Below the pieces are notes generated by a model. That model did no database searches, was not told the DNA's origin, and was given only the letters and a program-made list of their open reading frames with translations. From Paraphysomonas bandaiensis (taxonomy: Eukaryota; Protista; Chrysophyceae), in assembly GCA_965644295.1 (NCBI GenBank), contig CBFFRP010000335.1:1-64000 (forward strand): DNA of 64,000 nucleotides, given 5' to 3'. The translations under genes and the position numbers were made by a program. This document shows, piece after piece, positions 7,514-62,116 of this stretch. Position 1 is the stretch's first letter. Each line of letters opens with the position of its first letter.

Positions 7514-10500
7514 ATGGACAATTACATCGTGTTGGAGCATATTGGAGAGGGGTCTTTCGGAAAAGTGTATAAGGCTCGTCGAAAAAACACAGGATTCACT
7601 GTAGCTATGAAGTTTATATCTAAACACGGCAAAAGTGATAAAGACGTTCGCAACTTAAGACAAGAAATTGGAATATTGCGAAAGTTAAATCATGACAATA
7701 TAATATTGATGTTCGATGCTTTTGAAACTGACAGAGATTTTTGTGTGGTCACAGAATATGGTCAAGGCGAATTATTTGACATACTACAGGTATGTGTGTT
7801 CGTATTTACATGGACACATGAAGTGACATGTACTTCACAAGGACGACCAAAGCCTCCCGGAAGCCACTGTACAGAAGATTGCAAAACAGTTGGTTCGTGC
7901 ATTGTACTATCTCCATTCCAACCGTATCATTCATAGAGGTACATGTGCATTCCAATCCCAATTGTGTGTTTGTGAATTAATGTGAGGTACATTTAGATAT
8001 GAAGCCACAGAATGTATTAATTGGATCAAATGGAACATTAAAATTGTGTGATTTTGGCTTTGCACGAGCAATGTCTTCGAACACTCTGGTTTTAACGTCA
8101 ATTAAAGGGACTCCGCTTTATATGTCCCCAGAATTGGTCAAGGAGCAGCCTTATGATGCCACATCAGACTTATGGTCACTGGGAGTAATTCTTTACGAGT
8201 TATACGTGGGCCAACCTCCATTCTACACAAACAGCATTTATTCCCTCATCAACCATATTGTGAAAGACCCAGTAAAATATCCTTCCAGTATTAGCCGTGA
8301 TTTCAAATCGTTTTTGTATGGACTACTGCAGAAGAATCCATCCAAGCGACTAACATGGCCGTATCTTCTTCAGCATCCTTTTGTCCAAATAGCAAGTGAC
8401 TCTGGTGCAGGCCTTGTGAGAGAGGAAGAAATTGCGAAGCGCGCATGCTACGGAGGTCTGGGTGGACCCCGTGAGCGTCTGGAAGTAATAATGCAGTCGG
8501 ACTCCAACGTCCTCTTCGGCACACAAGCCATTCCATCTACCGGTGTGAAGCGAAACGATGGAGTGACTCTACCCCATGAAGCTTCTGTGCGGCAACGGCA
8601 GGCCATGGCTAGACGCAGAGCTGAGGAACGAAGAGAACGGAAGGAGAGAGAACGCAGAGAGAAGGAGGAAAAGGCACGTGCAGCAGAGAGGGAAAGGCGT
8701 AGAGCAACCGAAGAGGCTGCAGAAAAACAAAGAGAGGTACTAAGAAGGCAAAGAGAAATGGAAGCTCAGATTGAAAGGGAGCGTGCTGAACGGAGCAGAC
8801 GAGACGCCGAAGAAGCAGAACGAGAAGCGCGAAAAGCCAAAATACTCAAAGATGAACAGTTGCAGGAAATAGAGGAGAGTAAACAAGAAGAAGTAAAAAA
8901 TGATATCGAGTCAGCTGTAGCAACAGAGATGATTCGTGAAAGACAAGTCATTGTGGAGGAGAGTATCATGGAGGATTCCACAGTTAGAGGAACTCTACTG
9001 GCGCTAGGCCGAGATGTATCATTCGCTCACTCTGTTTCAGAAGAGTTTGACCTAAATAATGCATCTGCTGATGGCCAACAGGAAGCCGGACAAGCACTTG
9101 TTGTTCCAGAGGATGCTGTGCTAGGTGGGATAGCTGTGCTTGCCGAAACGCCAATGTCTGCTGCTAGTGGGTTTTCTGATGCGTACTCAGAAGAGTTTGA
9201 AGAGGACGAATTGATGTCTCCCACAAGCTTACCACACCCTGGGACTGCTCAGCCGTTCGAAAAAGCTGTAACTAGTTATTCCCAGAAAGAAAGTATTTGC
9301 GCAAGCAGAAGCTCAAGTAGCAGTAATATTGATGACAGGGATGTGGTGGGAGCATCCATGCGAGATGGCGAAGCTGATGTGAGCGAAATGGACTCGTTTA
9401 GGGAAGCATATGGTGATTTGTCTCTGTATTGGTACACTGTACACGGCGAGTTTGGCCTTGGATCGGATTCCTCCACAGTAGTAGCTCCAACAAACGTCAT
9501 TATTAACGCCGCATCTTCGAAGGCGTTCCACGAACAGCTCAATGTCATTGTGAGCGTGACGATTGAAGGAATTGAAGGCGCTGATGGGAGGTTATCCCGT
9601 GTGCCTGAGTCCAGTGAGTTAGAGCTGCCCCTTGTACTTCGGCGATTACTAGGGATAACTCTGTTGGCTGTGCAGTGTGCTTCTTTGTCAGCTGGGACTG
9701 CTGTGCGCTTGCTTAGGGGGGCCGAGTCTAGGGTTCAAGAAGGGGGATCTTGTGACGTACAGTATCTGAAATCAGATAAAGGAATACAAAATGCTCTTAG
9801 CACCAGTGTTTTTCTCTGTCGCGTTCTCCCTTCCATGGTAGATATGTCATCGAAACTAGTTAAACTGCTGCAATACTGTTTGAATTCCTGCTCCTCAGAC
9901 GCTTATTGCGAGAAAGATTTCTCCACAGCGGTCTCTGTCTTGTCTGATATGTGTATTCTGATGGGGCATGTAGTTGCTTTGCCAAGCCATGCTCGTCTTT
10001 TTGCTGGTGTTCCGGATGCAGATTCATCTCATTCATCACCTATGAAAGAAATAACATTTCCCGTACAAGTGTCGGATCGATGGTGTCTAGTGTCCGTCCT
10101 CAGTGATATGCTTCAGTCTGTGGCAGTGGATCCTTCCAGAGCCCTACAGCGACAAAGTCTTCGCACTCTGGGCGCTGTGATTTCTTCGTCGCCGCCCGAG
10201 ATGTACAGCATGTTGTTTGCTCAACAACTCCCGTCTGTGCTTTGTGAGTGCCTGGAAATTGAAGACGATACTGTGGGCGTAACTTATGGTGGCACGACTG
10301 CGCCTGCTGTGTACAAAGAGGGGAGTGGGCCAATCGTTCTTTCACTTGCATACTGTGTTCACACACTAGCACTGTTACTTCACACTGTAAATCCGGCTTG
10401 GGGCACCATCCCTTTTGCCTTGGAATTGATATTAGCTCCGGGGTCTGTCTGCAGCGCTGGCTCACGCAATGATAGTGTGGGGGATGACAGCACAGTGTAT

Positions 10501-13500
10501 TCTGTAGATGGTGCACGTAAGGTTTCTTTGCGGCAGAGAGTATGTCGATTGGTGAGCGAAGCCTTGGTTGAAGGGTCTGCGCAACGTCTCGCCTCTGTAT
10601 TGTCCCTGCTGGAATATACATGTGGTTCCCCAGATGCACGGCGCGACGTCACATCGACCAGTGCATACGGATCTACTCCACTGGACTATACCATATTGGA
10701 CAGTGAAAAGGCTATTTTTAGATCAGCCACATTACGCATCTTGGCTCATCTCTCTGCGGTAGGTGGATGGGGAATATGTCATCACATTGTCACGAAAAAC
10801 AATTATGCTTGCATTCACTCATTGGTAGAATTCGTGAAAATGCAAAATACGGTGTGTAAAAACCGTGAACGATATAGTATCTCTGAATTCAGCAAAGTTT
10901 CGGATTCGTTCTCACATGGTTTGGCTTTAATTGCTCTAAGTAACTTGGTGCGCTGCGAATGCATCTCATATGACCTTTTGGAAGAGTGTGTTTCGGTGGC
11001 GCTTAAGACCCTACAAGGTAGCGATGATATACGTGTGATTCCCACAGCGGCCAGTCTTTTGTGCAATGTATTGGGTACTGTGCGACGGATTACAACTATA
11101 CAATCGGTAAATAAGAACATCGAGGATGTGGAGACATTTCGATCAGTGTCTGATTCTCGGAGCGGCACCACTCTTTCGTCGATTGTATTGAATCCAGAGG
11201 AATGTATAAAATTAGTTGAGGCCATTTGTATCGGTGTTGCTACTGACATGCATATTTTGTCTTCCGTACACAGTTTGTTGTCTTTTTTTCTTTCCTCGCC
11301 GTTGTCGCTGGATATATCCAGCGCATCTGAAATTCACTCTCAGGCGGAGTCATCTGGAGTATTGAGTGGTCGTAGATCAGATCCGTCTCTCTGGTTACTG
11401 GGTAATGAGTTTGGGATGCGATCTGAGGGCCTCCTTGATGGGGCTTTGGGGTTTATCGCAGGAGTTTTTAGGGCTGGCCTTGATTTTGAAGATGATACTC
11501 TGCTTTCATTTGGTAGTTCTACCAATCTTGCACAAAGCAGTCATCGTATTCGACACGCTATAGCTAGACTGATGTCATCCTCTACCTTGAGGGATATATG
11601 TGTTGCCATATGCAAACTTGTGCAGAGAACGGTAAGGTGGTGTTCTCTCTCTCTCTGATACCTGACCTTGTTCTAGGGATCTGGAGAAGTCTCTCCCGTC
11701 GGCGTACACGCAATATGTAAATGTTTAGATATGTATTTAGCGTATGATTTACGCTCCCCTTCCCCTCGAGTTGGGAGTGAGTTGTTGGAGTTTTCTTATA
11801 AGCACGGGCTACTTGGGATCGTCTCTCTCGCTTGCCTCCCCCAGGTATTTTAGTGCTAATGAAATAGTGTTTTTTTAATATTTCTGACGAAACGTATGCA
11901 GCATTTGGCTCTAGTAGAGGCGTGGTATCATGTCACCCATCCATGCCGCGGATCGCCACCTCCTGGTGCAGATTGTGGAACAGAAAGTCCGGGACTTGTG
12001 TGTTCTACTCTCGAGAGTGTTGTTAATATATATCGGTACCTTAGCTTTTGATATCTATGTTTTTTCTGATTTTTGGTTGATCAGCTCACTCCTGACATCA
12101 GTCAATATCGTATCTTCGACTAGGCAGGGTTCTGATAGTGACGTTGCTGCTGACAGCAAACACGTACAGTCATTCTATGATACCACCTACAGGTATGCAG
12201 TACGTTGTATATCTTGCTTGCAGTAGATTACATTTAGAGTCATGTAGGGCTCATATTATTAGGTGTCTTGTGGGGGCTTTAAGGTAATTTCTTTCTAAAC
12301 CTTGGACTGGAATGTTTGATTTTAGTTTGCTGCGTAGATCCTTCGGGGCTGTTTTATCAGTAAAAGTATTTGAGGACATTGTGTTTGTTTTGTCTGAACT
12401 GGTATTGACTTCGTCAAAGTTTCTACAACAGGTGGTTAATCAACTTCATATGGAATTCATCAAATAATTGTAGTGTGATATATAAAAGCAATGTTGCACG
12501 ATTTTTTTCTATGCATGACTATCCATTGTGCAGTTCTATGATTCCAAAGGTCTGGTGGTATTAGATCGACAAGACTGTTTTAGTACAGGACGCACATCTG
12601 GCCAAAAGAGCGATGATAATCACGCCAGTGCTACAGTATCTGGTCTGCAAATAGCATCACAGTTGGCCAGAAATTCAGAGAATTATTTCCCCCAACTCCT
12701 GGCGACTTTTACACCCTCCGTAATTGTGAATTTGCTGCTCACGGTAATGAGATCACTGTGTGGTTACCGTCACGTCACTGGCATTGCTTGCAGGATTCTG
12801 CTATAGTTCGAGCAAAAACATGCAATCTTGTAGGAAATATTTGCAGGTACCAGTGGCACCGTCATGCGTTCGGTTAATTTTGTGACTTGTGCGACAGACA
12901 TTCTGAAAGATTCTACCCGTCAATGCGAGCTGACGCCAGGGTTACCCATGGCGAGAATTCTATCCTTGAAAACATTATGTACCTTTGCATTGACGATGAT
13001 CCTACAACTCGAAAGTTTGCGTGTTTTGCTGGTATGTTTTATTGTCTCAACATGTAGTTCTTACATGTGTCTGTAATTATTGCATCATTGACCTGCCTAT
13101 ATTTACAGTTGGAAATGCGGCATTTCATAGCGATGCCCTGTACACGTACCTTGGACGAGGAGTACCGTTTCTATGTTCAAGCCTGAAAGACTCCGACGAG
13201 AAGACGCGAGCCAATGCTGCTGGAGCCCTCGGTAACTTTGTGAGAAATGGTGGACAGCTCTGTGATACTTTGTGTCGGGAGGAATGTCCAAAAATGCTGT
13301 TGCAAATTGCTGTATTTGATGACTCCATTTCAGCTAAGGTATGTACTCAGTGTGCACGTATGGCTTTAACAATGCCTGCATAGAGAATTGCCCTTTTCTC
13401 GATTGGAACGATGGCAGCCTATGAAACTTGCAGGTAATTCCAAGACTTATTACATTCGTCCTTAATTCAGCCGAATAATTGCACCAGACGGGCGTTACGG

Positions 13501-13671: not shown

Positions 13672-14810
13672 TAGCTTGGGCTCAATTCATCAGTTTTGAC
13701 GTTGGGCATTATGTATATAGGTCGAATAATCTTGTCCTACGTGCACATACCAATGCAACCTAGTATGTAGAATCTCTGTAACGTGCAATTTTATGTATTA
13801 GGTATCCAGCAATAATTTATGTTGTATATGGTATAGTTATTGTCATGATATATTGTACGAGTTGTATGTTAACCTGTAACAGCGAGAGGTTTACTATAAC
13901 CTGTTGGTAACATTGATTCATTTGCAATGGACTGTACCGAAGTACTGAAAGGATATAGTTGAGGGCATAAGAAAATTAGCTAAGTGTATTGGGAGTAATT
14001 CCTAGATATGATGTAGTATTGGTGTATTTATCATTGAATATGTAAGTGTTATACATAGAATGCCTCAATGACTACTATATTTATGTGTATTGATGATATA
14101 TATTACCATCTTTCTTTGTACTAGTTTTATAGATTATTGTCAATTTTGATGCCACTAGGGGAGATGAAGCCTCACATTGGTGACTTTATATTCCCTTTCC
14201 ATGTGCATAAGTGATAGTGGATAGCAAATAGCACTTATCACTGTTGGAAATTGCTGATTTTAAGCTAGATCACAGAGAGAATTTGTCGTAAGTCTAGATA
14301 GATTTATTAATATCGTTTGCACGAAGTTGTGATAACCAACACTAACTCATTTTAATCCACGCATAATATCCTACATGTGCGAACCTCTCGTTACTGAACA
14401 TATCTTGAAAGATCAAACTATATCAGTTTCTCAATATCATCACAGCATTTGTACATCACTATATTTCACTGTATTCTCGTACATTATCTTCAAGTGACAT
14501 ACTGAATTTACTAGAATAAGATCCATATTCTAATAATCACTTTTATACTTCTTGCAACACTTAACTGTAACTGACTACTCCCTAAAAAGCTGTCATAGAC
14601 TAATGTCTAATTATCCGTAACTACCTACTTTCTCATTCCTCATATCTACTCTTTCGAGAAACAGCATCCCAATCAAAAGGACCTAGTGTTCTGCTTACAA
14701 AAATAGCTTTATAGCTATGTAGAAACCCTTCGCATTCTATTTTCTAATATCTACTTCAATCTTCAATGTCACCCCACGGAATACATACGTATACTATGTG
14801 TACTATCATA

Positions 14811-15297
14811 TATTGAAAGTTTTATTTTTAGCAATAGGCGTTAAAAACCTGCACCAACTTAGTTGCTAGATGAATGCTAGACAAACTAGTTAGACCTTTT
14901 CCTGTAACTAATCAGCACACACACTTTTTATCCTACTATTTATCCTACGGAAGCTGGTTGTGCGTCGCCGCAAGCACCAAAGTGCGACCACTTCCGCTCT
15001 GAGTTCTTAAGGTGAACATCCCGGATGCTTGACTTCAGCAGGCATCGCCCAATACCCCGGTTACCCTTCAGGTGGGCCCATTCCCGGATGCCTGTTTATT
15101 CGTCAGGGCCCAAAGACGTCTACAAGTGACACTTATTGGTGTCCCTTCTTGTGTACCACGCAAGCATTCGGCTATGAGTGGGAAGAAGAATATCTGCTGA
15201 CTATGTTTGCGGCTCAAGTTGGTTTCTCAGAGAGAATCTCTCCTGTACATAACCCCCAGAACATCACGAAAAGGTGCGAGCCCGACTTTGTTGAGGG
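14811..15297 (-). mobile_element. Family X retroposon, full-length copy
   Basis: 14-bp TSD tgtgtactatcata (14797-14810) / tgtatactatcata (15298-15311). 5' end CCCTCAAC at 15297. Homologous to the other X loci. Confidence 0.85.
15210..15297 (-). ncRNA. HDV-like ribozyme fold at the 5' end of an X copy (probably decayed)
   Basis: CCCTCAAC-AAAGT-CGGGCTCGC-ACC-TTTTCGT-GAT-GTTCTGG-GG..CAGGAGAG/CTCTCTG (P4)..ACCAAC-TTGAGCCG, folded by eye. Confidence 0.55.
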
Positions 15298-15339
15298 TGT
15301 ATACTATCATAATATTTCAAGGGTTACCATAAACAACAT

Positions 15340-15432
15340 CCCTTGAACGATGTCGGACTTGCACCTTTTCGTGATGTTCTGGGTGATAAGTACCGGAGAT
15401 ATTTCTCCGGGAAACGAAACTAACGTGAGCCG
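15340..15432 (+). ncRNA. HDV-like ribozyme fold at the 5' end of an X copy
   Basis: P1 CTTGAAC/GTTCTGG (6/7); P2 CGG(A)CTTGC/GTGAGCCG; P3-L3 ACC-TTTTCGT-GAT; P4 CCGGAGA-TATT-TCTCCGG; J4/2 ACTAAC. Confidence 0.6.
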
Positions 15433-15938
15433 CATATATAATCAGCAGATATTGTTCTGCCCACTCATGACCAGGGACACAAATAAGTGTCGCTTATGTA
15501 GATGTCTTGGGGCCCTGATGCCTTGACAAATAAACAGGTATATTGGGCTGCCTACTGAAGTCAAGCATTCGGGTTTGTTCACCTTTAGGACAGAGAGAGC
15601 GAAAGTGGTTGCACCTTGGTGCTTGTGTAGACGTCTTCGAGTCTTAACGAATAAACAGGCATCCGGGGTATTGGACTGCCTGCTGCTGAAGTCAAGCATC
15701 GGTGCTGTTCACCTTAAGGACTTGAAAATCCTGAAGTCAGCAGATGTCAGGTTATCAACAATTTGCTTGGAGTGATAGAGCGAAAGTGGTTGCACCTTTG
15801 CAATTTGCAATGCAAAAGCAATTGCGGTGAGAAGTGAGGCATAAGCACCTTTCGTAGCGTTAAATAATGGAATATCAGAGTTAAGCACTGACTCTTAAAT
15901 GCTATTGCTATATTGCTAATAATAAGACATTCACTACT
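15340..15938 (+). mobile_element. Family X retroposon, full-length copy with an internal duplication
   Basis: 5' CCCTTGAAC..., 3' ...GCTAATAATAAGACATTCACTAC. Inverted relative to 14811-15297. No convincing TSD found. Confidence 0.8.
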
Positions 15939-15989
15939 ATACATTCTAGATAGAGTAGGCTTTCAACATGATGAGACTAAAGACTAAAT

Positions 15990-16040
15990 AACAATTTAAT
16001 CTAGGGTAAGAAGTATTGTCCTTTGTCCAAATTTTAAAGA
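15990..16040. repeat. Short interspersed repeat fragment shared with 41833-41905
   Basis: tctaggg..taagaagtattgtcc..tccaaa occurs at both sites. Confidence 0.5.
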
Positions 16041-17415: not shown

Positions 17416-17743
17416 AAGATACGTAGGAATTCCTACTCTGTAGTCTTACGTACATGTATTGTACATATCTATATGTAAGTGGGTACGATGTGTACCTGAG
17501 GATGGGTAGTGTACGTCAATTTAGGGAATACTGCAGAAATATGTTCCATCGAACCGAAGTGGGAAGATATTTCATGCACACGGATGTGATGCATGTACGG
17601 TGTATGCTGGTAGAATATCCCCCAGCGGCAGAATATCATGTCCAGATGTGTTCTGATGAAGCACTGCAATCGCAATTGTTGAAGTAGTCATTATATTATA
17701 CCACAGTCATTATTTTCACATGCTTTAAGAGTCAAAGTTGATA

Positions 17744-20700
17744 ATGGCGAAACATTTATTGTCGAATGTATTGACCAGTGTACTGGGCGAGTTTGTGGAA
17801 GACTTTAAGCCCGAGAACTTAAAGCTTGGAGTATGGAATGGCAATATAGCCTTAAGGAGAGTGAGACTGAATCGCGAAGGAATTAATAAACTAAACCTTC
17901 CAGTTGAGTTTGCAAGTGGTTTCATAGATACGTTAGAAATACACATTCCATGGACCTCTCTGGAGAGTCGTCCGGTACAGATTCTCATCAATGGAGTCTA
18001 TTTAATGGTTAAACCGCTTGACTTAACGACCATCAGCTCCGAAAAGGCAATTGAGCAGGCTCGTACTGCAAAACGAGGTGTGTTGGAAAGAGCAGAAAGA
18101 AATATTGAATTAGTTGCTCAACTAACGGAATCTGCTGGCGAGCCCCAAAAAAAATCCTCCTATTTCAAGAGCCTAACCACTAAAATTATCGATAACTTGG
18201 AAGTGGAAGTGAAAAATGTACACATTCGTTATGAAGATAATTTTTCGATCCCTGGAACAGTGTGTGCCACCGGCCTCACATTAGAATCATTTGTTATCAC
18301 CACCACTGACAAGGACTGGCAGCCTAGCTTTGTTACAAGAAAGTCCTCTGAGGTGGTACACAAGTTGTCATCAATTAATAACACGGCTATCTATTGGAAC
18401 ACGTCATGTAATTCACTTGGTGAAATGGGGGCCGATGAATGGGTAGAGTCGATGAGGCGTTACGTTGAAGCTCCGAAGTCTGAACGACCGCGAATGGAGT
18501 ATATCGTTCCTCCTGGAAACCATTTGTCTATGCGAATTACCCACAACGATTCCCCAAAAGCTACACCAAAATTGTCTGTTGCCATTGATGGTGGGTTGTC
18601 GGTAAAACTAGATAAAATGCAGTATGTGCAAGCATTTAATGCTGTCACCAGCATGAAAAACACACAAGAATGGCTTTCTTTAACTGTCCACAGACCAACT
18701 GTGTCCGCATCGAGGAATGCTAGGGAGTGGTGGCGCTATGCTTTGATACTTGTGACCAAGAATCCTAATATCATGACTGATAATGTTGGTTTATGTAACT
18801 CAATTTTCCATGTGTTCCTATTTGCATTGTATGTCGTGTCAATATTCACATAACACGTTAATTGGTCCTAATTTATATTTTATAGATGGAAGTGGCCATG
18901 TTATGCTGTCGTGAAAGGAAGCGCTACATGAATCTTCTACGCGAATCTAAAGGCAGCGACTCCAAGAAACCTTCCTCCTCACGTGAATCAGAGATAGCGA
19001 ATATCGAGGCCTTGTTGCCAACTCATACGTTGGTTGTGTTTCGCCAGCTTGTTATGACGGAACATATTCTTCAAACTGTTAAGGCAAAGGAAAATCCCGT
19101 CACTGTACCAGCAAAGGTGAAAGGCTGGCTAGAAAGTTTCTTTGATGGCAAGAAGGGAGCCAAACACAAAGATGCATCTGCTAATCCAACTTCTGAGAAT
19201 GCTGTTCCAGAGCCGCAGGATATGACACTGTCACAGATACAGGATAATATCCAAAATGTAGTAAACACAGACAAAACTGTGTCTGCGTTTACAGCTGATT
19301 TGACATTGTGTAATGTTGTTAATGTGTCGATATCATCCCATGGCGAGACCATCGCATCGATGGGTTTAAATTTATCTTTTGCAGCGGCGAAAAGAGAAGA
19401 TTCCTTTGATGCTTCTATGATAATCAGCAAATTTCTCATGACTGACGAGCTGTCTCCTAATCCAGTAGTACCTAGCATTGTTGACGTTCAACCACCTCAG
19501 GAGGGCGACGGTGCTGAAGAAGCTCTCATTCCTGAATTATTAACTGTCGAAAAACCGTTTTGTGGGTTCAGTGTCAATAGCTCGGAGGGGAAAAGTGTGG
19601 TAAAGTTTTTAGCTCTTCCACTAGAACTCTGCTTCAATAAAATATGTATTCGGAGGCTTCTTGACGTGTTTAGCGCTCCCAAGAAGGTTGTTCCTATTCG
19701 TCCAAGCATACCAAATAAGAACTATCACGATTCTTCGAATGTTTCTCGAAGAGCACTAAAACATTCCCAGCATCTTCACAGTGGTAAATCTAATGTCAGC
19801 GACGAGATTGATAGGAGTAAAGAAATTCATCACGCATACTCACAAGGAGTGGAAATATATGTTGATATCAACGGTCCTAAAGTTCTGATCCCGGAGGATT
19901 TCGGACATGATATGGGACTTCTAGTTCTAGATACTGGCCGCTTGTCTGTACGGGGCAACGTCAGTCCAAAAGGTGTAATGAATTGGGAGATTAAGGTGCG
20001 TGACATTCACTCGTGGATGCCGCGCTCTGTCGATGCGAGATTTCAGTCTGCAGATTCGTTTTTGATTCAGCCATTTGAGTTGTCAGTTAATGCTCAGAAT
20101 GAAAATAAAACAGTGGCAAATATGACTGTGGACGCATCACTCGGCCCGACTGTGAAATCTGATATAACACCCATCGTCCTGGCCAGGCTTCTACACATAT
20201 CTGAAGAGTTGTCATTTGCTTTGAAACCTCCAGATCGGGCTGGAAAAGAAGATCTCGATGAAGTGGATAAAGTGAATTATTCGTCAAATCGAAACCGTTT
20301 GAACACCAGTGGAGCGAAAAAGGTTAACAGTGCTGTGGAACCTGGAGTCCGTATCATGCTTGTGTCACTGAAAATCGGAGAGATTTCCATCTGTATGCAT
20401 TCTGATTCAACTCATTCGTTGATATTCTCCGTATCCAATATGGCCTCCTGTGTGGGCGTTCGTTCATGCGATATGGAGGCTACTGTATCTCTTGAAGGTT
20501 TGGGACTTCAACGCTCCGTGCAGAATCAGCAAAGCCACATCATAAAATCTAACGATGACAAGGACTTCTTATCAGTAATTTACACTCAAGTTAATCACAT
20601 TGACTCGCCGTTGGAGTATGAACTCTCTAAAACTATTAACGTAAATTTTGGACGTCTGGGTATTTTTGTCGACAGCCACTCGTTACTGCATATGAGGCCG

Positions 20701-23700
20701 TTTTGTGAAGTATTGATGGGAAAACAGATGGTTCAATATCAATCAGCAGATTCCAGATCGCGTAGTTTGAAATCATCTGGTGATCAGACGCTACGGTCAA
20801 ACAATGATTCTTCGAACTCAATGTCAAGAGTTTTATCACGTAAACCGTCTGAAGTGTCTACAAAAGGTGATAAGTCTGTACCGGGCGAAAAAAAGACGAA
20901 TAAAAGATCACCTGTTCCAGTTGCTTTATCTACTGCCCCTCCCGATGGCTTAAGCTTGGATTTGAAGATGAAAGGTCTCTCAGTTAGCTTTTTGAGAGCA
21001 GTTGAAGGTGCCAGCGATCATGGTTGCGAGGAATCGAATATTTCATTACCGATAGAAGTTTCAGAGGTCGTTTTGCTTGAAGATATAGCGTCTCTGCACA
21101 TTGATGGGTTTTATGTTGGATTGAAAGCATCACCGAATAAAATTAATGCTGACATAACACTTCAGTCCATCAGTGCAAAAGATATCCGCGAAAGTAGCGC
21201 GGAATTTGCTTACCGCTATATGCTTTGTCCAGTGTCATACTCCCCCGTATCTGGTGATACCGTCAGTGACCAAAATAAGAGTGACAAGGATAGTATATGC
21301 GGGCAGGATAATCCCAAGCAGTTGAGTGTTTCCTTCTGGAAAGACAATGTGGAGGACGTAACTGATATAGATGTACTTGTACGAGATATTACCGCTTTTG
21401 TTTCACTTGATGCAATGTTAGACCTCGCGTCAGTTGCTCAGTCCTGTGTTGAGTCCGCCTTATCTCTCATGGAACCGATTGCTGATGATCCCCACCTAGA
21501 TGACATGAACGCAACGAAGTGTGTGAACGAGGTGAATCAATCGGAGTGCTATGAGCGCGGTACTTCGCCTTCGCAATCGGAGATCCGCATCAACGCTCGT
21601 GTTCAAATAATTAGCCCTCAGCTCATATTTCTCGAAGATCCATTGAATAAGTTCACCAGAGCTTTAGTGTGTCGTATAACGTGCAACACAGAGTACCGTA
21701 AGGCACCGGACAGTTGTGGCAGTAGTGTTGACCACGTGCTGCTTTCAGTAGACGAAAATGAAATATTTATCGTTCCCAGCTTGATAAACTGGACTCCTAA
21801 TCAAATAATGCGCTCCACTGGACTGGAGTTGTCTGTAACTAAAACTGACGAACGACTGAAAGTTCACTTAGATGTTGATGATTACGTGACCAATATATCG
21901 TTAAGTGATATCTCCCTTGCTCAAGCAGTTTTGATGCGTGCTACATTGGTTGACAAGCCCCCTCAGGCCCAGCAGACAGACAGTGTGTCTTCTCAAGGAA
22001 AGAACGAATTAAAATCGAATAACAACTCTGGGTTGCCGAGCTCATTGAGTGTGCACGTGGACGTAAAGCATATAGCTGTATCTTTGGTAAATAATTTAGA
22101 TACTGCGATAATCCCATTGTTCAGATTAGGTATTGAGTGCATTGAGTTCGAAACTAATGGACGTATGAGTGATATAAGTGGCTCTGGTTCAGCAAGTTTT
22201 CAAGCAAAATACTATAACAGGAGCATTCATGCGTGGGAACCCATTGTTGAACAATGGACACCTTCCTTTGCAATATGTGTAAGTGAAAAGGAAATGCGAT
22301 TCAATTTGAGTGCTGATAAATCGCTGCAATGCAATATAACGAGTTCATTGCTCAGCATAGTTGCGGACACAGGCAACTTAATATCTGAGGGTTCTGTCTC
22401 TAACAACAGTCGAATAGAGTCTCGGTCTTTGGTAATCAGAAATTGTTTGGAGGTTCCTGTGTCGTTGTACGACAGTGCTACGAACTCATCTATTTTTCAG
22501 CGTGCTTTAGGTTCGAACGAAGTTGGTGTGTTAAGTTTGTCCGAAGACAATATACCTTCTGAGGATGTAGTGGCTGTGATGCCGAAGGGAGTATTTCCTG
22601 ATAACCTAGATATCTGTTTCGAACACACGAAATGGGAAAATGTTGATTGTGTGAAGTCATTGCCGTTGGGATCTATTTCAATACATATTCGCTCGTTGAG
22701 AGGAGAGAGTAGAAAAAATATGATGCTCTATTGGGACTGCAGTGAGCGAACATTTGATGGACAAAGGGTTATATCCCTTCGGTCTTCGGTCTATATTAAG
22801 AATTCGCATTCGTATGCCATTCAGTTAAAAACAGATGATGGTACTGTCTTTGGTCCTATAAATTCGGGATCTATGGGGTGCGTTCCGTTGTCGTGTGTAT
22901 CTTCAACAGAATCAGTGTTCTTACGACCCGTCAACGATTGCAGCTATAAATGGAGTGAGCCGATCAAATGTGAGCTGTCATCTAGCTGTCCACGTACAGA
23001 TAAAATAGTTACGAGCAATCCAAGTGATTCAAACAAAGCTTCATTAGCTCCAGTAGTTTTCAGTGGACGTGTCTTATGTCCTGAAGACTCGGTATGTATT
23101 GAAATCAGTCCACTCATCGTGATCATAAATACCCTTTTATCCTCATTGGAATATAAATTTTCCTATTCATTATCTCATAAACATTCACCGTCTAATGACA
23201 TTGAATATGGCCGTTTAGCTCCCGGATCCAGTGCCAAAATACGATCTGTCGTATTTCCAAGCGACAAAATAACTTTATCGTTCCATCTTGCCCCATATGG
23301 TTGGAGTGATGGACAGCTTATTGCACCGTCTTCGTCATATCAATCTCCTAAATATAACCTTAAGGTGCCGCTCAGGGGATCTCATGAAGCCCCTGATTTA
23401 TTACTACGTGTTAGTGTTGAGCGTGATCCAACAAGCAGAAACCCCACCAAGATATATATTTATAGTAAAGAGCTAGTAATTGATCGCACTGGTCTTGGCG
23501 TTGCAGTGAAAGCTTCCGGAATGGATAAAATATTTTCTCATGGGCACCATGTGCGATCGACCGGAACACGAGATACAACTATTTGTAGTGATAATTCTTC
23601 ACTGATGAAAGCTGGGAAGGTAGAAGACTGTGCATCAGCAGTCGACTTACGCGCCTTTGAAGTTCACAGTCGTCGGAAATACAATGTTTCGTCCCTCACA

Positions 23701-26700
23701 GCTGGAAGTCTAGTGCATACAGATCGTAGTATTCGATTTTCATATGTACCGAACATTCTGTTGAACGCAACTTACATATGTACTCCCGCTGATGACAGAT
23801 TGAACTCAGTCAATGGAGGAAGTGTGATGGTGTTTAAAACAGATGTGCCTGTGTTTGTTTGTCTGTTTGTGGATAAACAATTGAAGAAGTTACCCGACTG
23901 GATGTATTGTCATGACTACCGCGAGTTTTCAGTTTTGTTAACTGCTCTGGACTCATCAAAGAAACAGCTGGTAGAACACTTCTATGGAGTGTATGGCAGA
24001 ATGTACGAGGCGGGTGAAACAATATCACTTCGCACGGGCTACTCGTCCCAGTCCAAGTCGATGTACAGTGCATGTGTTGTTGCCATTGACCGCCAGTCAC
24101 AGTCACACCTAAACTTAATTCAAGATATTGACTTGCAGGGGAGACATGATGATAGCAGTGAGATGTGTTGGGTAGAGGGCTCACACGGAGTGACCTACTT
24201 CAGTACTCGTAGTAACGGAAAATTGAACATTGGTATTGATGACGGTGCAGCGTGGTGTCAATCTGATATCTCTATGGCTGCAGTTGGTGGAGAGAAAGGA
24301 ACTTTTGAAATTTTACATGAACGTAAACACTATCAACTAGCATACAAGATTTATACTCTCCCTGGCATCTTCCAGCGAACTAAGGCATTGACTGTGATGC
24401 CCCGTTATGCCGTCACCAACTTCACGGAGGAGGATATTCAGATTTCATCTTCCATCCCGAGGAGGGGGGATGGGGACATGACTGTCACACCGTTCGCATC
24501 GAAATCGTGGCATATGCCGTCCAGTGCTTCGCACGGAACCAATGTTCACTTTAAAATTGGATCTAGCGAATGGAGTTTAGGACAAGTGGATATCAATGAA
24601 ATCGGTATCACTGAACTATTGTTACCATATAAGGATGGATCTTCTAACGAACCAGCTGTAATCAATGTGGGTGTCAAACTTGCCCTTTCCAGTGACAACT
24701 GCGCAATATCCATCGTGATTTGGAAATCTCGCAGCCCAGAGGCCGCGCCGATATCTATAAGAAACAATACGTCGGAGAGTATCATTGTACGCCAGAAATA
24801 TATGACGAATGAGACGCAGCCTAAATCAAGTACTAATGGGTCGTATGATGTGCTTGTTGCTCCGAATTCTTGGGTGCCTTTTGGCTGGGCATGTCCTGAG
24901 AACGAAAGAATCGTAGTAGTCACTACCGGTACTTCCTTTTCTTCCAATGAGCATGTTGTGGACGTTAATACTCGAGAAATATCGAAAAGACAAGATTTAA
25001 TTTGTACTGATGGAAGCAAGAAAAGTGTTTTTATGTCCTATGAATTAGGCGGCTGGGTCGTGGAAGTATCTGTCGACACCAATGATGAGAATGACAGAAA
25101 TGAATTTGATGAAGCTCATCCCAAAACCTTATCTTTTGTGTTAGATATAGCTGGGCTTGGTTTGTCTCTTGTTGCCGATTCCCCTACTCGAAGGGAGCTA
25201 TTGAACTTTTATCTTCAAAAACTAGATAGCATGTATAGCATCGAAGGTACTGCGACTTCTATTTCGTTAAATATTGGGGGCTTTCAAATTGATAACTACT
25301 CTGAGTCGGTCGTTTACCCAGTATTATTTCGTCCCATTGATCAGAAAAAAGCAAGCAGCAACAACAATGAAAATAGCCACGGTGATGATTTTATCCAGTT
25401 TTCACTTGTTCAAGAGAAGTTCGTCAGCGCGTCTACCTCTCTTAACTTCACTGTAATAAAATACTTGTCTGGGAGAATTCTACCGTTTTTGATTGAAATC
25501 GATTCTGCTACAATCCAGCTGTTGTTGAGTGATTGGCTTAGTGGTGCTACACAGAGTAGTCCTATTAGCTCCGCAGAAAAGAATCCAGAGCAATGGATTG
25601 CAAAGTACAGTGAAAGGACTTTATCATGCCAAGATCGCAGGTATCTGGTTGATGGATATGAAGCCCACAATAGGGTGAGGTTGGGCAAGTTGCTGTTTGA
25701 AAACGTAGTATTGCACCCAGTTATGTTGTCAGTGACTTTCCTTCACATGGACCTGCCATCTAGTCGGGAGGACACAAAGCATAATGTGTCATCATATGCT
25801 TTGGACCTGTTATCAGAAATTGCAAATGTTCAAGGCATGCAGCTCAAATTTGGATCGTTTATAGTCAGTAATGCTGTGGATGCAAAAGGTACACCAATTT
25901 TACACCTCGTACATAACGCCGCATACGTCATTTCGCATTGTATATCCATGTATCATAGTATGTGTTATCACAAAAGGAAAAACGTAACTAATCACTTCAT
26001 TTGTATTTCAGACTCCATGGCTGATCGTGTCAAAGGAAAGTATATTCGAGATGTCGCACTGCAACTCGGTTCTGTGCTCGGAAGCCTAACTATTATTGGG
26101 TCTCCGGCAGGTCTCGTGAGAAATATAAGTGGGGGGGTTCAAGATTTCTTCTATGGTAAGCTATGTCTATGCCACACTTTAAATTAATATTAATTGTATC
26201 TTGGTATTTGAGAAATTAGTAAGTGCACCTTTGTATTCAACTTATTATTTCCATCAGAACCTGCAGCTGGCATTGTCCAGAGTCCTCAGGATTTCGTGGT
26301 GGGATTATCAAAGGGAACTACGAAGCTTGTGTCTGGAGTTGTTGGTGGAGCCCTATCATCTACTGCGGCAGTGGTGGGCAGTGTATCCACGGGCGTGTCA
26401 TACTTCAGTGGTGATTCAGACTACGTTCGAGAGCGCGCGTTGAAGAAACAACGTCAAGCGGCCTCCAAATCTGGTGCTGCCTCGGGAATAAAGGATGGTG
26501 GTAGCAATGTACTCTCTGGCATTGGTTCTGGAGTGACAGGACTGTTTACGAAGCCGATACAAGGAGCTAAAGAAGGTGGTGTTGTGGGGCTCTTCAAAGG
26601 TATCGGCCAAGGCGTCGCAGGAGCGGCAATAAAGCCAGTGCTGGGGATCACAGATGGACTAACATCCATCACACAAGGCATTTCCAATCAACTTGGTGAT

Positions 26701-28469: not shown

Positions 28470-29764
28470 CCCTCAACAATATGTCGGACTTGCACCGTTT
28501 CGTAGTGTTCTGGGGGATATAGCTGTATTTGCCACTCTTGAGATTGCAGCGCTCCAACCGAATAGCTATGACAAAATTCTGCTGGGATTCGACGGCCCCG
28601 TCACCATCTTTCTGAACAGTATTACTTACCCTGCTCGTGCGCTTTCGTATGGTACCTCTTCTTCCGGGTCGTCGTTGAATATGTCGCCGCCACGAATGTC
28701 GACGACATTATTCTTCCCGTTGCACTTATCCTACACCATTACACACAGTTAGTACAGTGTATATAGTAACAACGCAAAACAATAATCAGAACAATACCGC
28801 ATATTATACACGAACGACTACCCCGTCACCATCTTTATGATCAGTATTACTTATCCTGCTCGTGCGCTTTCGTGGCACGTCTCTTCCTCCGGGACGTCGT
28901 TACTAATTAGTGCCCCTTGTACCACACAAGTATTGCCTATGAGTGGGCAGAACAATATCTGCTGACTATATATGCGGCTCACGTTAGTTTTCCTGGGAAA
29001 CATCTCCGGTACCACCAGAACACCACGAAGAATTGCAAGTCCGACTTGTGGTGTTCTGGTGGGAAAAAAGTACCGGAGATATTTCCCCCGGAAACTAACG
29101 TGAGCCGCATATATATTATATAGTCAGCAGATACTGTTCTGCCCACTCATAGGCAAATGCTTGTGTGGTACAAGGGACACTAAGGACACTTATTAGTGTC
29201 CCTTGTGTAGACGTCTTTGGGCCTTGACGAATAAACGGACATCCGGGGTATTGAACGTAAGTGGAGAGTATGTTTAAAATACGGCTTCTATTATTACTGG
29301 TAAACGTACCAGAAGTTCAGTTGATTATCGCTTGTATGAATAGCACTTGGTAATATATAGAGTACTATAGTATGCATGTATTATATATATAAATGTAACC
29401 GTTACAATAACCATTACATTTTCACTTCTTGGACCTGTAACTAATATAAAATTTATTGGAGAACAAGGGGCATGGGATGAAGTTGGCTGGTCGGGTCGAG
29501 AGTTGCACAGAATACACCAATGTCAAATTCCAGCAGAGTGAGTAGCTACTCCATGGGCTGCCTACTGAAGTCAAGAATCCGGGCTAGTTTACCTTAAGGA
29601 CAGAGCAAAAGTGGTTGCGCCTTGGTGCTATCGGTGACGCAGAAGGAGCTTTCGTAGCGCAAAATAGTAGGATATCAGAGTTAGCACAAGTTCGTTAAAT
29701 TATTTTTTTGCTACATTAGTTCTGTCTCTTACACGCCTATTGCTAATAATCAGAGTTTCACTAC
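28470..29764 (+). mobile_element. Family X retroposon, composite copy with cargo and an internal inversion
   Basis: Perfect 12-bp TSD taatttgaactt (28457-28468 / 29765-29776). 5' CCCTCAAC and 3' TTCACTAC ends are both present. Confidence 0.88.
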
Positions 29765-46621: not shown

Positions 46622-47243
46622 ATAGTCTAGGGAATGTTGATATGATATATTTACAATATTTCTATGGCCAATTTTAGCTTAATAATGGTGAGAATATGCT
46701 AACGCTCTATTTATAATTTTGGTATGGGGACATTACTGTTGGCAGTGTCTGCAGCAGTACTGAGGAGTATAAAAACATCCCCATACCAGTGGGCAGTGCC
46801 TGATACACAATACTATCTACCAGAGAACCGTATATTGATATTATGCTATTACAGATTACAGAACAGTTTTTTTGTACATATTGAGGTTCCACTAAATCCT
46901 AGGTGATGAGTATATGCTATATTGTATGCAATTGAAAGGTGGATTTTATGGTATCCGAATTATAACCGTTACGTACAGTATGCTGTAGTGGTAATGGCGT
47001 TATATGAATTATATCAGTAAAACTGATATACTTTGACTGTATAAGATCGTGACAATATAAGGTTTAATGTAATTGAATGGGGGTGGACGAGACGACATAA
47101 ACGTAGTAAATAATGATAAATATTAATCACAATTGTAATACTTAGTTATTGAGTGTATTCAAAAAACTCACTTGTTTAGGTAATCATCCTAGTAGTGAAT
47201 GTCTTATTATTAGTAATAGGCGTTTGAGAGTCAGAGCTAAATA

Positions 47244-47553
47244 TATTAACATATGCTTTTTAAGAGTGCAATATTGACTGATTGATATTAAGGGAGATAT
47301 AGTAAGTTTATGATGTTGTAGCACTGTGAGCTAGGAACCACGTCATTCACCAACATCAACATTCTGTTCTACAAATCGTATCTTTAACAGCTACTATATT
47401 TTCAGTTTCTTTGTATACTTGTAATAGCTACTCCTATACTGTAGTCATGTTGTATATTCTGTATTTCATTGCTACATAGAATACAGGATAACTACTAGCG
47501 ATAGACTTTACCAAACTTCAAGTACGTACGTAGGAGTTGGTTGTAGTTCAATA
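47244..47553. mobile_element. Solo LTR (310 bp), same family as 36328-36637
   Basis: Aligns without evident gaps to 36328-36637. TATTAA...TCAATA termini. TSD aaata/aatta (4/5). Confidence 0.82.
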
Positions 47554-47954
47554 AATTAGCACAGCAATTTAAATATCTGGTGCCTAACTCTCTAACTCTG
47601 ATATCCTACTATTTAACGGTACGAGAGCTGCTTGTGCGTCACCGCAAGTACCATGATGCAGCCGCTTTCCCTTTTTCACTCAAGGCAAACGCAGTGAGCA
47701 AACAGAATGTTGATATACCTGACACGTGCTGACTTCAGGATGCTTGAGTCTTGACTTCAGTAGGCAGCCCAATACGCTGGTTTCCCTTGAGTTGAGCCCA
47801 GTCCCGTAATCCCGGATGCCCTTGAGCGTTGAGGCCCTGAGGTGAGCCCATTTTCGGATGTCTGTTTATTCGTCAGAACCCAAAGCCCAAAGCCGTCTAC
47901 ACAATGATACTAATTAGTGTCCCTTGTACCACACACGCATTCGGTCTATGTTTG

Positions 47955-48043
47955 CGGCTTACTTTAGTTTCCTGAAGCAATCTCTCCAATACTCATCCCC
48001 CAGAACACTATATGAGAAGGTACGAGTCCGAGTTTGTTGAGGG
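47955..48043 (-). ncRNA. Decayed HDV-like ribozyme fold at the 5' end of an X copy
   Basis: CCCTCAAC..CGGACTCGT-ACC-TTCTCAT..GTTCTGG-GG..TTGGAG/CTTCAG (P4)..ACTAAA-GTAAGCCG. Confidence 0.5.
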
Positions 48044-48406: not shown

Positions 48407-50465
48407 CTACGCATTGACACTTATTGGATTTGTCATTTCTGACTGGCGTTCAATGCTGGCAGCGGAAGGCTTATACGAGTTCTTCTTTATGTAAAGAATA
48501 GAACTCACTGCCAAAACAACGGCTACCGCAGCTGCACTTATAACCACCACAACAATACCGGTGGTGCTGTCCACAAAGCTCTTGTCATCGTCACCACCAT
48601 GGTTGTTGCTGGATGACTTGTCGTCGTCATCATCATCCGGTTCCGAGTCTACATTAAACGCTGCTTTAAATATATCTACGTTCTTATATATCGTCCAGCC
48701 GGCCAAATCTGCAAGTAGGTTGGCCCTCTCGATATTGGTGTGGGCAAGTGCGGTAGTATAGTGCGGGAAAGATGCGAATGGCCCGATCGCCTTGATACTC
48801 GCTTGGTTCTGTGGGTCATTCAAGGGGACTACCAGATCTTGCATTTCCTCACTAAGCTCACTTTCCCATGTAAAACACCGGCCAAGATATACCCAAATAA
48901 CATTTACAAGACGCCCAGGTTGTATTCCGTATTTATCGTTCCGCACTGTGGTGTGGTTAAGTGACACGACTATTCCATTTCCTGTTGCCTGCGCCGCTTG
49001 CAGTGCCTTCGCCATGGGTACCCACTCATCTGAATCGAACACTTGAGAATTCTCAAGGTCAAACGAAGTATTACTGATGACTCCAAGCCCCTCCGCAATA
49101 TGTCCAAACCATGCCGGAACTGTAAAGTCAATATAGTCCTCGGTCAAGACATCAGTAGCAGGATCCCAATGAGTGGAATTATACATAGGCACAGATGTTG
49201 TTACAAATGCAACAATAGTAGATACATTTCGTTGAAGAAGAGATATGAGGTTAGTATTAGAAACACCAGCTCCATCGGCAATAACGTAAGACTCAAACAT
49301 GTCACTTGGGTTACGGGCCGAAGGCGAAAAGTAGTTAACTAGTCCGGAGGTTTGTTGAAGAGGTACTGAGCTGCTTGCAGCCACACTACAGCCAACTGCC
49401 CAGGAAGATGAGCCGGAAGTAAGAGCTAGATCACACTCCACTGTGGAAGGCGGAATAGATAAATTCCCCGTCGTCTGGCCGACAGGCAATCCGACGGATG
49501 GGGCATTTGCACCCGAGAATGCGAACGGTTCAAGTAGCCCGCCCACTGTCACCTCACGTGTCTCTGATTCATCATCTGTTATGTAAGTCACATTATTAGA
49601 GTAAGCCACGCCAACAGAGAGCGGGGTCCATTCTATTAAGGTGTAGTTACGGTTAACAGGGGTAAATGGGAGCATATCAAATGGTCCGATAAGAGTAGTA
49701 GAGATTATAGGAAAAGGTCGAGGGTCTATATCAGCCGTATCTCCATCACCGTTTCCTCGTAACACATAGAACTCAAAGGAGCTTAAGTCCGGGTTTCGAC
49801 TCTTTATATCAGCAACACTATCCTTGTTATATGAGTACCCGACTCCTCTCTCAATGCCCGACGGAGCAAGATATATCGCCTGGATATACATTGGGATCAT
49901 GTTCGTATAAATAGAGACAGACATACCTCCACAGCGTCCGCCCAGTCTTCAAACTCCGGTCCTTGTAGAATATATGACGAATTTGTGTATGATCGCACGC
50001 AGTCAGGGTCAATTAGCTTGAGACCTTCGTAACTTATGTTGGCAGGAAACACAATCTCACCCAACATTGTCGAGTCACTCACATTACCTTTCTGGTAATA
50101 TGAATACACAGTCGCAGCCCACGATCCTCCACTACAATGTTAAATAATACGTTAATATAATGAAGACAATCGTAATATACATATCACCTAACCCCCACAA
50201 GGTATCTCACGCTATCCATGAGACCGAGTTCGTGAAATGCACCCAAGTAACCAATCGATGCTGCGAAAGCTCTGTCGCCACCTCCAGAAAGTGACAACCC
50301 CACATTCGGACGAGATTTAACTTCTGGGAGTGAATATTCAGGAAAAGGCAGCAGGTCAGTGTCGGGCCCGATGCTTTGCCAAGCCTTTACGTCATAACTG
50401 GACACAGAGACAGCGAGCAGAAGGAGGGCAGTGCAAACGAATAAATCTGCATGATACTGCCACAT
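48407..50465 (-). CDS. Lysophospholipase/cPLA2-like lipase with signal peptide and C-terminal transmembrane anchor; 3 exons
   Basis: LSLSGGGDRA..G.L..L; nucleophile elbow G.SGG.W split by an intron; ADG.G..N; TM IVVVVISAAAVAVVLAVSSILYI. Confidence 0.85.
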
Positions 50466-50557
50466 TTTGCAATAAGCACTCGAAAAGTGGTGAGTGGGAC
50501 TGTCCAGCAAGAGCACAGAGTTAGATACTATAAATATCAATGGCCGAGATCTCATTC

Positions 50558-50922
50558 CATACATACATAGCTACATACATACATACATCATACATACATA
50601 CATACATACATACATACATACATACATACATACATACATACATACATACATACATACATACATACATACATACATACATACATACATACATACATACATA
50701 CATACATACATACATACATACATACATACATACATACATACATACATACATACATACATACATACATACATACATACATACATACATACATACATACATA
50801 CATACATACATACATACATACATACATACATACATACATACATACATACATACATACCTACATACCTACATACATACATACATACATACATACATACATA
50901 CATACATACATACATACATACA

Positions 50923-50954
<32 letters not shown>

Positions 50955-51655
50955 CATACATACATACATACATACATACATACATACATACATACATACA
51001 TACATACATACATACATACATACATACATACATACATACATACATACATACATACATACATACATACATACATACATACATACATACATACATACATACA
51101 TACATACATACATACATACATACATACATACATACATACATACATACATACATACATACATACATACATACATACATACATACATACATACATACATACA
51201 TACATACATACATACATACATACATACATACATACATACATACATACATACATACATACATACATACATACATACATACATACATACATACATACATACA
51301 TACATACATACATACATACATACATACATACATACATACATACATACATACATACATACATACATACATACATACATACATACATACATACATACATACA
51401 TACATACATACATACATACATACATACATACATACATACATACATACATACATACATACATACATACATACATACATACATACATACATACATACATACA
51501 TACATACATACATACATACATACATACATACATACATACATACATACATACATACATACATACATACATACATACATACATACATACATACATACATACA
51601 TACATACATACATACATACATACATACATACATACATACATACATACATACATAC
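50558..51655. repeat. (ACAT)n tetranucleotide microsatellite, ~1.1 kb
   Basis: Direct observation; few interruptions. Confidence 0.99.
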
Positions 51656-51771
51656 ACATCTCGCTGTCTTTAACTTCGTTTCACCACAAGTGTGCTCGGC
51701 GAACGGCGAATAAGAAGCCTATTAACTATATTTCTCATTGTGTGCCAGAAGAGTGTGAGTTCTTGGCGAAA

Positions 51772-61093: not shown

Positions 61094-61390
61094 AATCATG
61101 CAATTGTGTCATAACTTGACAGAGCAAGCAGAATGATGATATTCTTGACAATTGCTGACATCAGGATTTTTGGGTCTTTAAGGTGACTAGCCCGGATGCT
61201 TAACTTCAGCAGGCAGCCCAACCCCGGATGCCTGTTTATTTGTCAAGGACGTCTACACAAGAGACACTTATATTAGTGTCCTTGTAGCACACAAACATTC
61301 GGCTATGCATACCCAAAACAATATCTGCTGTCTATAAATGCTGTTCACGTTAGTTTTCCGAAGCAATCTCTCCAGTACTTATCCCCCAGT

Positions 61391-61620
61391 ACACCACATC
61401 TCACTATACACCACTATATACCATCTCACTATAGAACACTATACCATCTCACTATATATTCCATTATACCATCTCACTATACACCACTATATCATCTCAC
61501 TATATACTACTATACCATCTAACTATGCTAATATACCATCTCACTATACATCACTATATACCATCTCACTCTATACACCATTAAACCATCTCACTATATT
61601 ATACCACTGTACCACTACAC
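61391..61620. repeat. Minisatellite, ~10 copies of ~23-bp unit TATACCATCTCACTATACACCAC
   Basis: Direct observation of repeated CCATCTCACTAT cores. Confidence 0.92.
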
Positions 61621-62116
61621 TACGAAAAGGTGCGAGTCTTACTTTGTTGAGGGGTAACCATCCTTCAAATTTCAAAATGTCTGTTTTGGATACTAGAACC
61701 TATTAATAATTAATATTATTCTGTCTGGCAACACCACGAAAAGGTGCGAGTCCGACATTTTTGAAGGGGATCATATTAGATGCTGTATGTGCACATAATA
61801 TTTAATATTCCTATATATATTGAATACTGACCACCTCACAGCTAAGAATAATTTTGAGATACCATATTATTTAACCTCGATATTGTAGTTGAAACTATGG
61901 GATTGATCAAATCAAAAATAATTGTTTCTTCTATCACAAAGTTGAAATCTTAGTCACTCCTCGGAACAATGAAGTCATAGTAGTATGGCTAATCCTATGC
62001 AACATAGTTCAGGTGAGGCGGTGGGGCATTAAGCAAATTACTAATAGAGATATATATTCATGGACTGAAGTCTACCATATATAAGTAAGCCTTTAGGCTG
62101 TACTCTACACTATCTC

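Follow-up and report, generated by a model that had tools for sequence, protein, structure and literature searches.

The stretch at positions 15340-15432 of the Paraphysomonas bandaiensis DNA analysed here (the window, 64,000 nucleotides in all) raises the question of whether a retroposon in this organism begins with a self-cleaving RNA. An earlier note, made from the letters alone, had read the stretch as an HDV-like ribozyme heading a retroposon family, in the order P1-P2-P3-L3-P3′-P1′-P1.1-P4-J4/2-P2′. Sequence reading and alignment with 49 other copies identified it as the decayed head of one SINE copy, with the following parts.

15340-15432, + strand: SINE head with decayed HDV-like motif, ~93 nt
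15340-15348, + strand: P1, 5′ strand
15354-15362, + strand: P2, 5′ strand
15363-15365 with 15373-15375, + strand: P3, broken (GAT)
15366-15372, + strand: L3, TTTTCGT
15376-15383, + strand: P1′
15393-15399 with 15404-15410, + strand: P4
15411-15424, + strand: J4/2, putative catalytic C at 15420
15425-15432, + strand: P2′

This copy departs from the family consensus at several points: P3′ is GAT where the consensus has GGT (15374), TG replaces the GG after P1′ (15384), GAAAC is duplicated (5 nt) in J4/2 at 15411-15420, and P1 has one extra base. None of the window copies, 15340-15432 included, passed a relaxed HDV descriptor. The whole element to which the decayed head belongs and the other copies in the window are as follows.

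15340-15936, + strand: whole copy, an old rearranged SINE of ~600 bp (blastn and tail pattern)
14809-15297, - strand: complete SINE copy of ~510 bp, head at 15209-15297, first C at 15297
28470-28519, + strand: head fragment, initial ~50 nt only
28902-29247, no single strand: two 5′-truncated copies fused head-to-head, a near-perfect palindrome centred at ~29045-29048
47196-48043, - strand: old copy, complete head at 47954-48043, tail at 47196-47211
61122-61397, - strand: 5′-truncated copy beginning at element base ~31
61617-61653 and 61730-61767: two head fragments of 37-38 nt

By blastn, the copy at 15340-15936 has about 78-80% identity to family consensus copies and contains an internal duplication; its tail, AATAATAAGACATTCACTA, lies at 15918-15936, and no clear TSD was found around it. 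The copy at 14809-15297 lies head-to-head with it, is 87.5% identical to a young copy and is bounded by an 11-bp TSD with 1 mismatch (14798-14808 and 15299-15309). Genes for a protein kinase (7999-11658) and a VPS13-like protein (17738-26187) lie on either side of the pair. The copy at 47196-48043 retains about 68-69% identity to family consensus copies. A seemingly perfect P1 at 28902-29247 (CCACCAGAACAC with GTGTTCTGGTGG) was rejected as a case of compensation, being a by-product of the inverted join.

The site does head a repeat family, as had been claimed. Further occurrences of a 30-nt core (around 15354-15383) were found in the window where chance predicts 0 matches; a 131-nt query gave 1810 first-look candidates in the 62.5-Mb assembly, and a 23-nt head core gave 1464 genomic matches (754+710) at ≤3 mismatches, compared with 0 for the reversed control. 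The 19-nt 3′ tail gave 707 genomic matches at ≤1 mismatch. Alignment of 41 copies showed that similarity begins exactly at CCCTCAAC and that the upstream flanks are unrelated. In about 26 copies, TSDs of 11-15 bp adjoin the first C with zero added bases, which places the TSD-defined 5′ end at the predicted cut site, in agreement with the earlier reading. At the 3′ junction of full-length copies there are 0-6 extra A/T bases, and poly-A is absent. A 321-nt 5′ module is common to two families at 93-95% identity; family 1 is a SINE of ~500-515 bp and family 2 is a 1212-bp element (copies 96-99% alike) with no ORF >95 aa. The majority-rule comparison was restricted to this module, which is non-coding. 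Elsewhere, two heads lying 745 bp apart at G000:C408:166522-167864 (L198 and L199) have an identical 12-nt upstream flank and both carry T40A; they look locally duplicated, not separately inserted.

The final 190 nt of the ~510-bp SINE show 87% identity to the 3′ UTR of a 6.3-kb LINE, which was reached through a PF00078 profile search; a PF14529 search for it gave no match. This partner LINE, found at L190:289-6584 (G000:C80) and in L185 and L188, has a single long ORF of 2058 aa in which a SET domain is followed by Exo_endo_phos (APE) and RVT_1 (RT) domains. It is young, two copies being 99.6% identical and one carrying a 9-bp TSD (CCAGGCCTT). TSDs, the lack of an ORF and of poly-A, and the LINE-derived 3′ tail together support the assignment of the family as a LINE-dependent non-coding retroposon. 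The LINE starts with GGCTTCAACCCC and lacks the SINE head, implying that the head is a 5′ device specific to the SINE.

A tail near 106036 of the window's contig was considered as an end of the partner LINE and discarded: no RT lies upstream, and one of the local ORFs is a DNase II gene. This DNase II family ORF (Pfam E = 3e-55) is at G000:C335:100577-101374 (L183:4578-5375), ~36 kb past the window. A piece of ~36 nt from the 3′ module shared by SINE and LINE (SINE bases 330-365) also recurs at L187:7011-7047, L189:6095-6130 and L189:7738-7773, with 83-86% identity, downstream of the long ORFs in two further elements that carry an RT; this piece may represent a shared 3′ UTR RNA structure.

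The HDV-like drawing was made on a reference head at L002:1502-1589 (~88 nt), which agrees with the 41-copy consensus and is numbered from its first C.

1-8 with 36-43: P1, CCC/GGG and AAC/GUU paired, U4:U40 and C5:C39 unpaired
14-22 with 80-87: P2, 8 bp with one bulged A and one G.U, adjoining P3
23-25 with 33-35: P3, ACC/GGU, 3 bp
26-32: L3, UUUUCGU, 7 nt, of the form U...CG
44-45: GG after P1′
53-59 with 64-70: P4, 7 bp
71-79: J4/2, GAAACUAAC, including C75

The order given in the earlier note is present in this consensus, P1′ directly abutting P3′ as in the nested double-pseudoknot order of HDV. In J4/2, C75-U-A-A is followed by one extra C and then by P2′, and P3 is paired in 94.6% of cells among 50 distinct heads. 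The consensus L3 is the one from which a weak P1.1 had been anticipated: the GG after P1′ faces the UU of L3, so P1.1 would be limited to two G.U wobbles. One particular of the earlier reading had to be amended: J1/2, given there as AAATGT, is AAAGT in the consensus. The putative catalytic C is present wherever a window copy extends over it, as stated there; genome-wide it is present in 47 of the 50 distinct copies, having been lost in 3. The drawn topology is shared with HDV and CPEB3, as are the C followed by N-A-A, catalytic in those two, and the 3-bp P3. L3 is UCCUCGCU in HDV and UUCACGU in CPEB3, and the L3 and J4/2 motifs of the SINE head agree with both. The head differs from these two ribozymes in the 2x2 internal loop of P1, a P1.1 that would be wobble-paired and the additional base in J4/2, and it is not matched by their models RF00094 and RF00622.

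How specific the motif is was judged with a descriptor. It specified P1 of 7-8 positions with ≤2 mismatches, P1′ straight after P3′ and then GG, P2 of at least 7-8 pairs with one bulge permitted and ending at P3, a 3-bp P3, L3 of 7-8 nt in the form T...CG, and C-N-R-A 0-1 nt ahead of P2′. The result showed that the consensus head and 27 family heads from the sampled loci (L001-L042) fit the descriptor, and that 20 Mb of Markov-random sequence contained 6 matches at the head's quality (~0.3 per Mb). Without a P4 hairpin as a further requirement, the chance of a fit at a fixed start is ~3e-7, an optimistic estimate because the descriptor was fitted after the fact. As tens of chance matches are expected genome-wide, the weight rests on the coincidence of the motif with the TSD-defined first base.

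The covariance-model search for HDV-like ribozymes that had been proposed gave no support. Rfam returned no ribozyme family in the window (gathering score), in 14800-16000 (E<=10) or in the head alone, and RF00094 and RF00622 gave nothing significant across the whole genome. Divergent HDV-like ribozymes are known to escape these Rfam models. A metagenome scan with the pattern of L3, GG and J4/2 gave 120 loci, all of them chance matches and none head-like; one weak descriptor match was found among them. Sequencing runs with three organism codes (A, B and C) each contain about half or more of the sampled element and flank 31-mers, so near-identical copies exist in several strains or species and could serve for a comparison across species.

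The substrate helix is sub-canonical. In the HDV register, P1 is predicted at -5.7 kcal/mol, compared with -13.4 for the perfect 7-bp P1 of L1Tc and -13.3 for HDV, and pairing bases 1-6 with 40-45 instead, in a shifted register of 6 bp, is stabler, at -8.7 kcal/mol, and would displace P1.1. The two central mismatches that the earlier note had listed as a weakness are not confined to old copies: each of the three main head variants sampled has them in its consensus, and the central pairs (U4:U40 and C5:C39) are unpaired in 48-49 of the 50 distinct copies. The consensus does not form the continuous P1 of ~7 bp from the cleavage site that serves as a criterion for HDV-like ribozymes. The nested P2+P3+P4 fold, at -24.1 kcal/mol, is near the MFE of -26.2, the MFE fold itself having the shifted P1 and an extended P3; the overall MFE is unremarkable (z = -0.95).

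Such a P1 could mean that a genuine HDV-like ribozyme was the ancestor of the head, which is now dead or very slow, its P1 and P1.1 having degenerated, and is kept for another role while the 5′ end is set by other means. Retention of the L3 U...CG, of C-U-A-A and of P2, P3 and P4, next to a P1 and P1.1 that are sub-canonical in the three main variants, would fit such a history, and several trypanosomatid SIDER heads are inactive despite an adequate drawing (PMC4035085). However, the family was amplified recently (copies 96-99% identical) with exact 5′ ends, so something must define C1 efficiently, and the variants at P1 positions 4, 5, 39 and 40 included no ancestral copy whose P1 is perfect. 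We consider this history improbable. The changes A4, A40, G5 and G39, which would repair P1, were rejected as amplified lineages, being independent events in copies 74-97% identical to the consensus; one copy combines G5 with G39, which are unable to pair. T>A changes are in excess at positions 4 and 40, though not clearly beyond the general mutation spectrum, and the variant G43T was seen in 4 copies only.

The earlier note had looked to covariation in P1, P2 and P3, and had named its absence across many copies, together with a lack of cleavage, as a reason to give up the ribozyme. For the full pseudoknot in 50 distinct heads, 85.9% of cells are paired and the covariation score is 0.075; with shuffled partners the values are 85.9% and 0.074, and 206 of 500 shuffles reach the real score. 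No covariation above shuffles was thus found in these helices, which formally is the refuting outcome named there, although the power of the test is almost nil because copies are dead on arrival and active lineages are near-identical. A null result is expected if dead copies decay neutrally, and it counts neither for the fold nor seriously against it. Between the three main head variants sampled, P4, a peripheral helix that is dispensable, is the only one to differ (4 columns), with 0 differences in 70 core head bases versus ~10 in 233 downstream bases (P about 0.05). Variant B has an additional G-C pair atop P4, the sole master-level compensatory event seen. The changes in P4 that had earlier been taken for pairing kept through sequence change mostly consist of C>T and G>A at CpG positions in a CCGG...CCGG palindrome. 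Within the head the mutation rate is 10.9% for CpG sites and 4.9% for the rest (2.2x), and 79% of CpG changes are transitions; deamination on both strands therefore makes P4 changes mimic compensation, as with C-G to U-A in the 48043 copy.

The 5′ end itself has to be explained. In tRNA-, 5S- and 7SL-derived SINEs, likewise short non-coding composites with a 5′ head and a LINE-derived 3′ tail that are mobilised in trans, complete 5′ ends are also found in most copies. The present family differs in having no Pol III-type head and a ribozyme-like one in its place. ARAGORN found no tRNA-like fold in the element, no Rfam small RNA matches it, and a T4 run lies within the head (bases 26-29), all of which make a Pol III SINE promoter unlikely.

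The head could instead be a structured 5′ module. It might be a promoter or initiator inside the element, probably for Pol II, that fixes the start at C1, or it might serve the LINE machinery in binding or stability; the HDV drawing would then be a coincidence helped by two real hairpins. Several observations point this way. The entire 321-nt module, not the head alone, is conserved between the families (the contrast between head and downstream bases reaching a P of about 0.05 only), and CATCCGGGA and GGGCCCAC motifs recur in it; a canonical ribozyme would need a stronger P1; and covariation and Rfam matches are both absent. In addition, marine metatranscriptome runs (poly-A and cDNA) contain the element, the poly-A-selected contigs counting in favour of this explanation; in assembled contigs such as these, ends, strand, read-through and DNA carry-over are unreadable. 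In the same runs the depth over the unique flanks of L002 is zero. This explanation has to accept HDV-specific motifs falling at the exact first base by chance, at the ~3e-7 per position given above. Reverse transcription of capped RNA frequently adds a 5′ base, as in LINE-1 insertions, and the about 26 junctions show neither an added 5′ G nor any other added base, which fits an uncapped template. On balance a structured module without ribozyme activity seems unlikely, though it deserves serious weight. Within the module, L002:1690-1810 (bases ~190-310) is a G+C-rich stretch with three CATCCGGGA and two GGGCCCAC repeats, which could be protein-binding or promoter elements and in that case bear on this explanation.

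A precise 5′ end on a structured head without a recognisable promoter would also be produced if a cellular nuclease, RNase P-like or another structure-specific enzyme, recognised the folded head and cut at its 5′ edge. ARAGORN and Rfam gave neither a tRNA-like fold nor a match, nothing specific speaks for such an enzyme, and we regard its involvement as very improbable.

We consider the chances about even that the first ~88 nt of the SINE are a non-canonical HDV-like self-cleaving ribozyme of the L1Tc type, of which 15340-15432 would be a dead example. The proposal is plausible: given its specificity and its position, the motif should not be dismissed, while the substrate helix is sub-canonical in the amplified lineages. 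A SINE copy would be transcribed inside a longer RNA, and its head would fold as a nested double pseudoknot (P1 1-8/36-43, P2 14-22/80-87, P3 23-25/33-35 and P4 53-59/64-70) with the putative catalytic C75 in J4/2. The head would then cut immediately 5′ of C1, leaving a 5′-OH RNA that starts at the first base of the element, and this RNA would be copied into new sites by the RT of the SET-APE-RT LINE, the source of the SINE's 3′ UTR and tail. Pseudoknot folding, cleavage, dependence on read-through and independence from a promoter are what we infer from sequence and its predicted folds.

Among the closest known counterparts is L1TcRz/Pr77 of the trypanosomatid elements L1Tc, NARTc, ingi/RIME and SIDER, an HDV-like ribozyme and internal promoter in the first ~77-90 nt that cuts at +1, a head position like that of the SINE; Pr77 sets the transcription start for L1Tc. 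Both heads start with CCCT, pair C1 with G, have GGT ahead of P1′ and CTAA in J4/2. Primers for the L1Tc ribozyme, whose activity is proven, show the start CCCTGGC, GGT followed by GCCAGGG, and CTAA before P2′ (PMC3185411, PMC4748587), and in L1Tc-type ribozymes, which pair C1 with G, breaking this pair cripples activity (PMC4035085). The ribozyme also occurs on non-autonomous elements in trypanosomatids, with TSDs of about 12 bp. The two systems differ in that P1 is perfect in L1Tc, that the trypanosomatid non-autonomous elements are deletion derivatives keeping the 5′ end of their LINE whereas the partner LINE of the SINE is without the head, and that the hosts are a kinetoplastid and a stramenopile; homology beyond short motifs is not recognisable.

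HDV-like ribozymes of R2 and RTE elements (insects, nematodes and others) and of R2-derived SIDEs free the 5′ end from a co-transcript. As in the SINE, a poly-A tail is absent, and non-autonomous derivatives retain the ribozyme. These ribozymes differ from the SINE head in starting with a G in a G.U wobble and in having canonical P1 and P1.1, and R2 is site-specific in rDNA, with LINE-derived non-autonomous forms. Retrozymes and hammerhead-bearing non-autonomous retroelements likewise use a small self-cleaving RNA to process transcripts, as proposed for the SINE, and twister variants are present in non-LTR elements of Schistosoma (PMC8501958). These differ in ribozyme class, position and biology, retrozymes having circular RNA intermediates.

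Ribozyme-bearing non-autonomous elements are thus already known in the literature, from trypanosomatids and R2. None of the papers searched links HDV-like ribozymes to stramenopiles, consistent with the earlier remark that no such system was recognised for protists of this kind. The fuller claim would be that of a promoter-less SINE with a deviant HDV-like ribozyme (2x2 loop in P1, wobble P1.1) acquired independently of its ribozyme-less LINE, the first in stramenopiles and the first SINE with a ribozyme head; we hold it tentatively, as somewhat doubtful. If the head cleaves, HDV-like 5′ processing of retroposons reaches stramenopiles, the defining head of a SINE could be a ribozyme in place of the Pol III promoter, with no inheritance from its partner LINE, and nature would offer an example of P1 irregularity tolerated by the HDV fold. 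If active, ~1,500 copies among genes could cut host read-through transcripts, an effect discussed for SIDER elements in Leishmania (PMC4035085). If the head does not cleave, it would be a caution that HDV-like drawings are easily made on structured 5′ ends.

Apart from the SINE copies, the window at 50001-52000 has a G+C content of 0.34 and a strongly negative GC skew (-0.41), with overlapping ORFs of 263-456 aa on both strands, suggesting a low-complexity or repeat-rich coding region.
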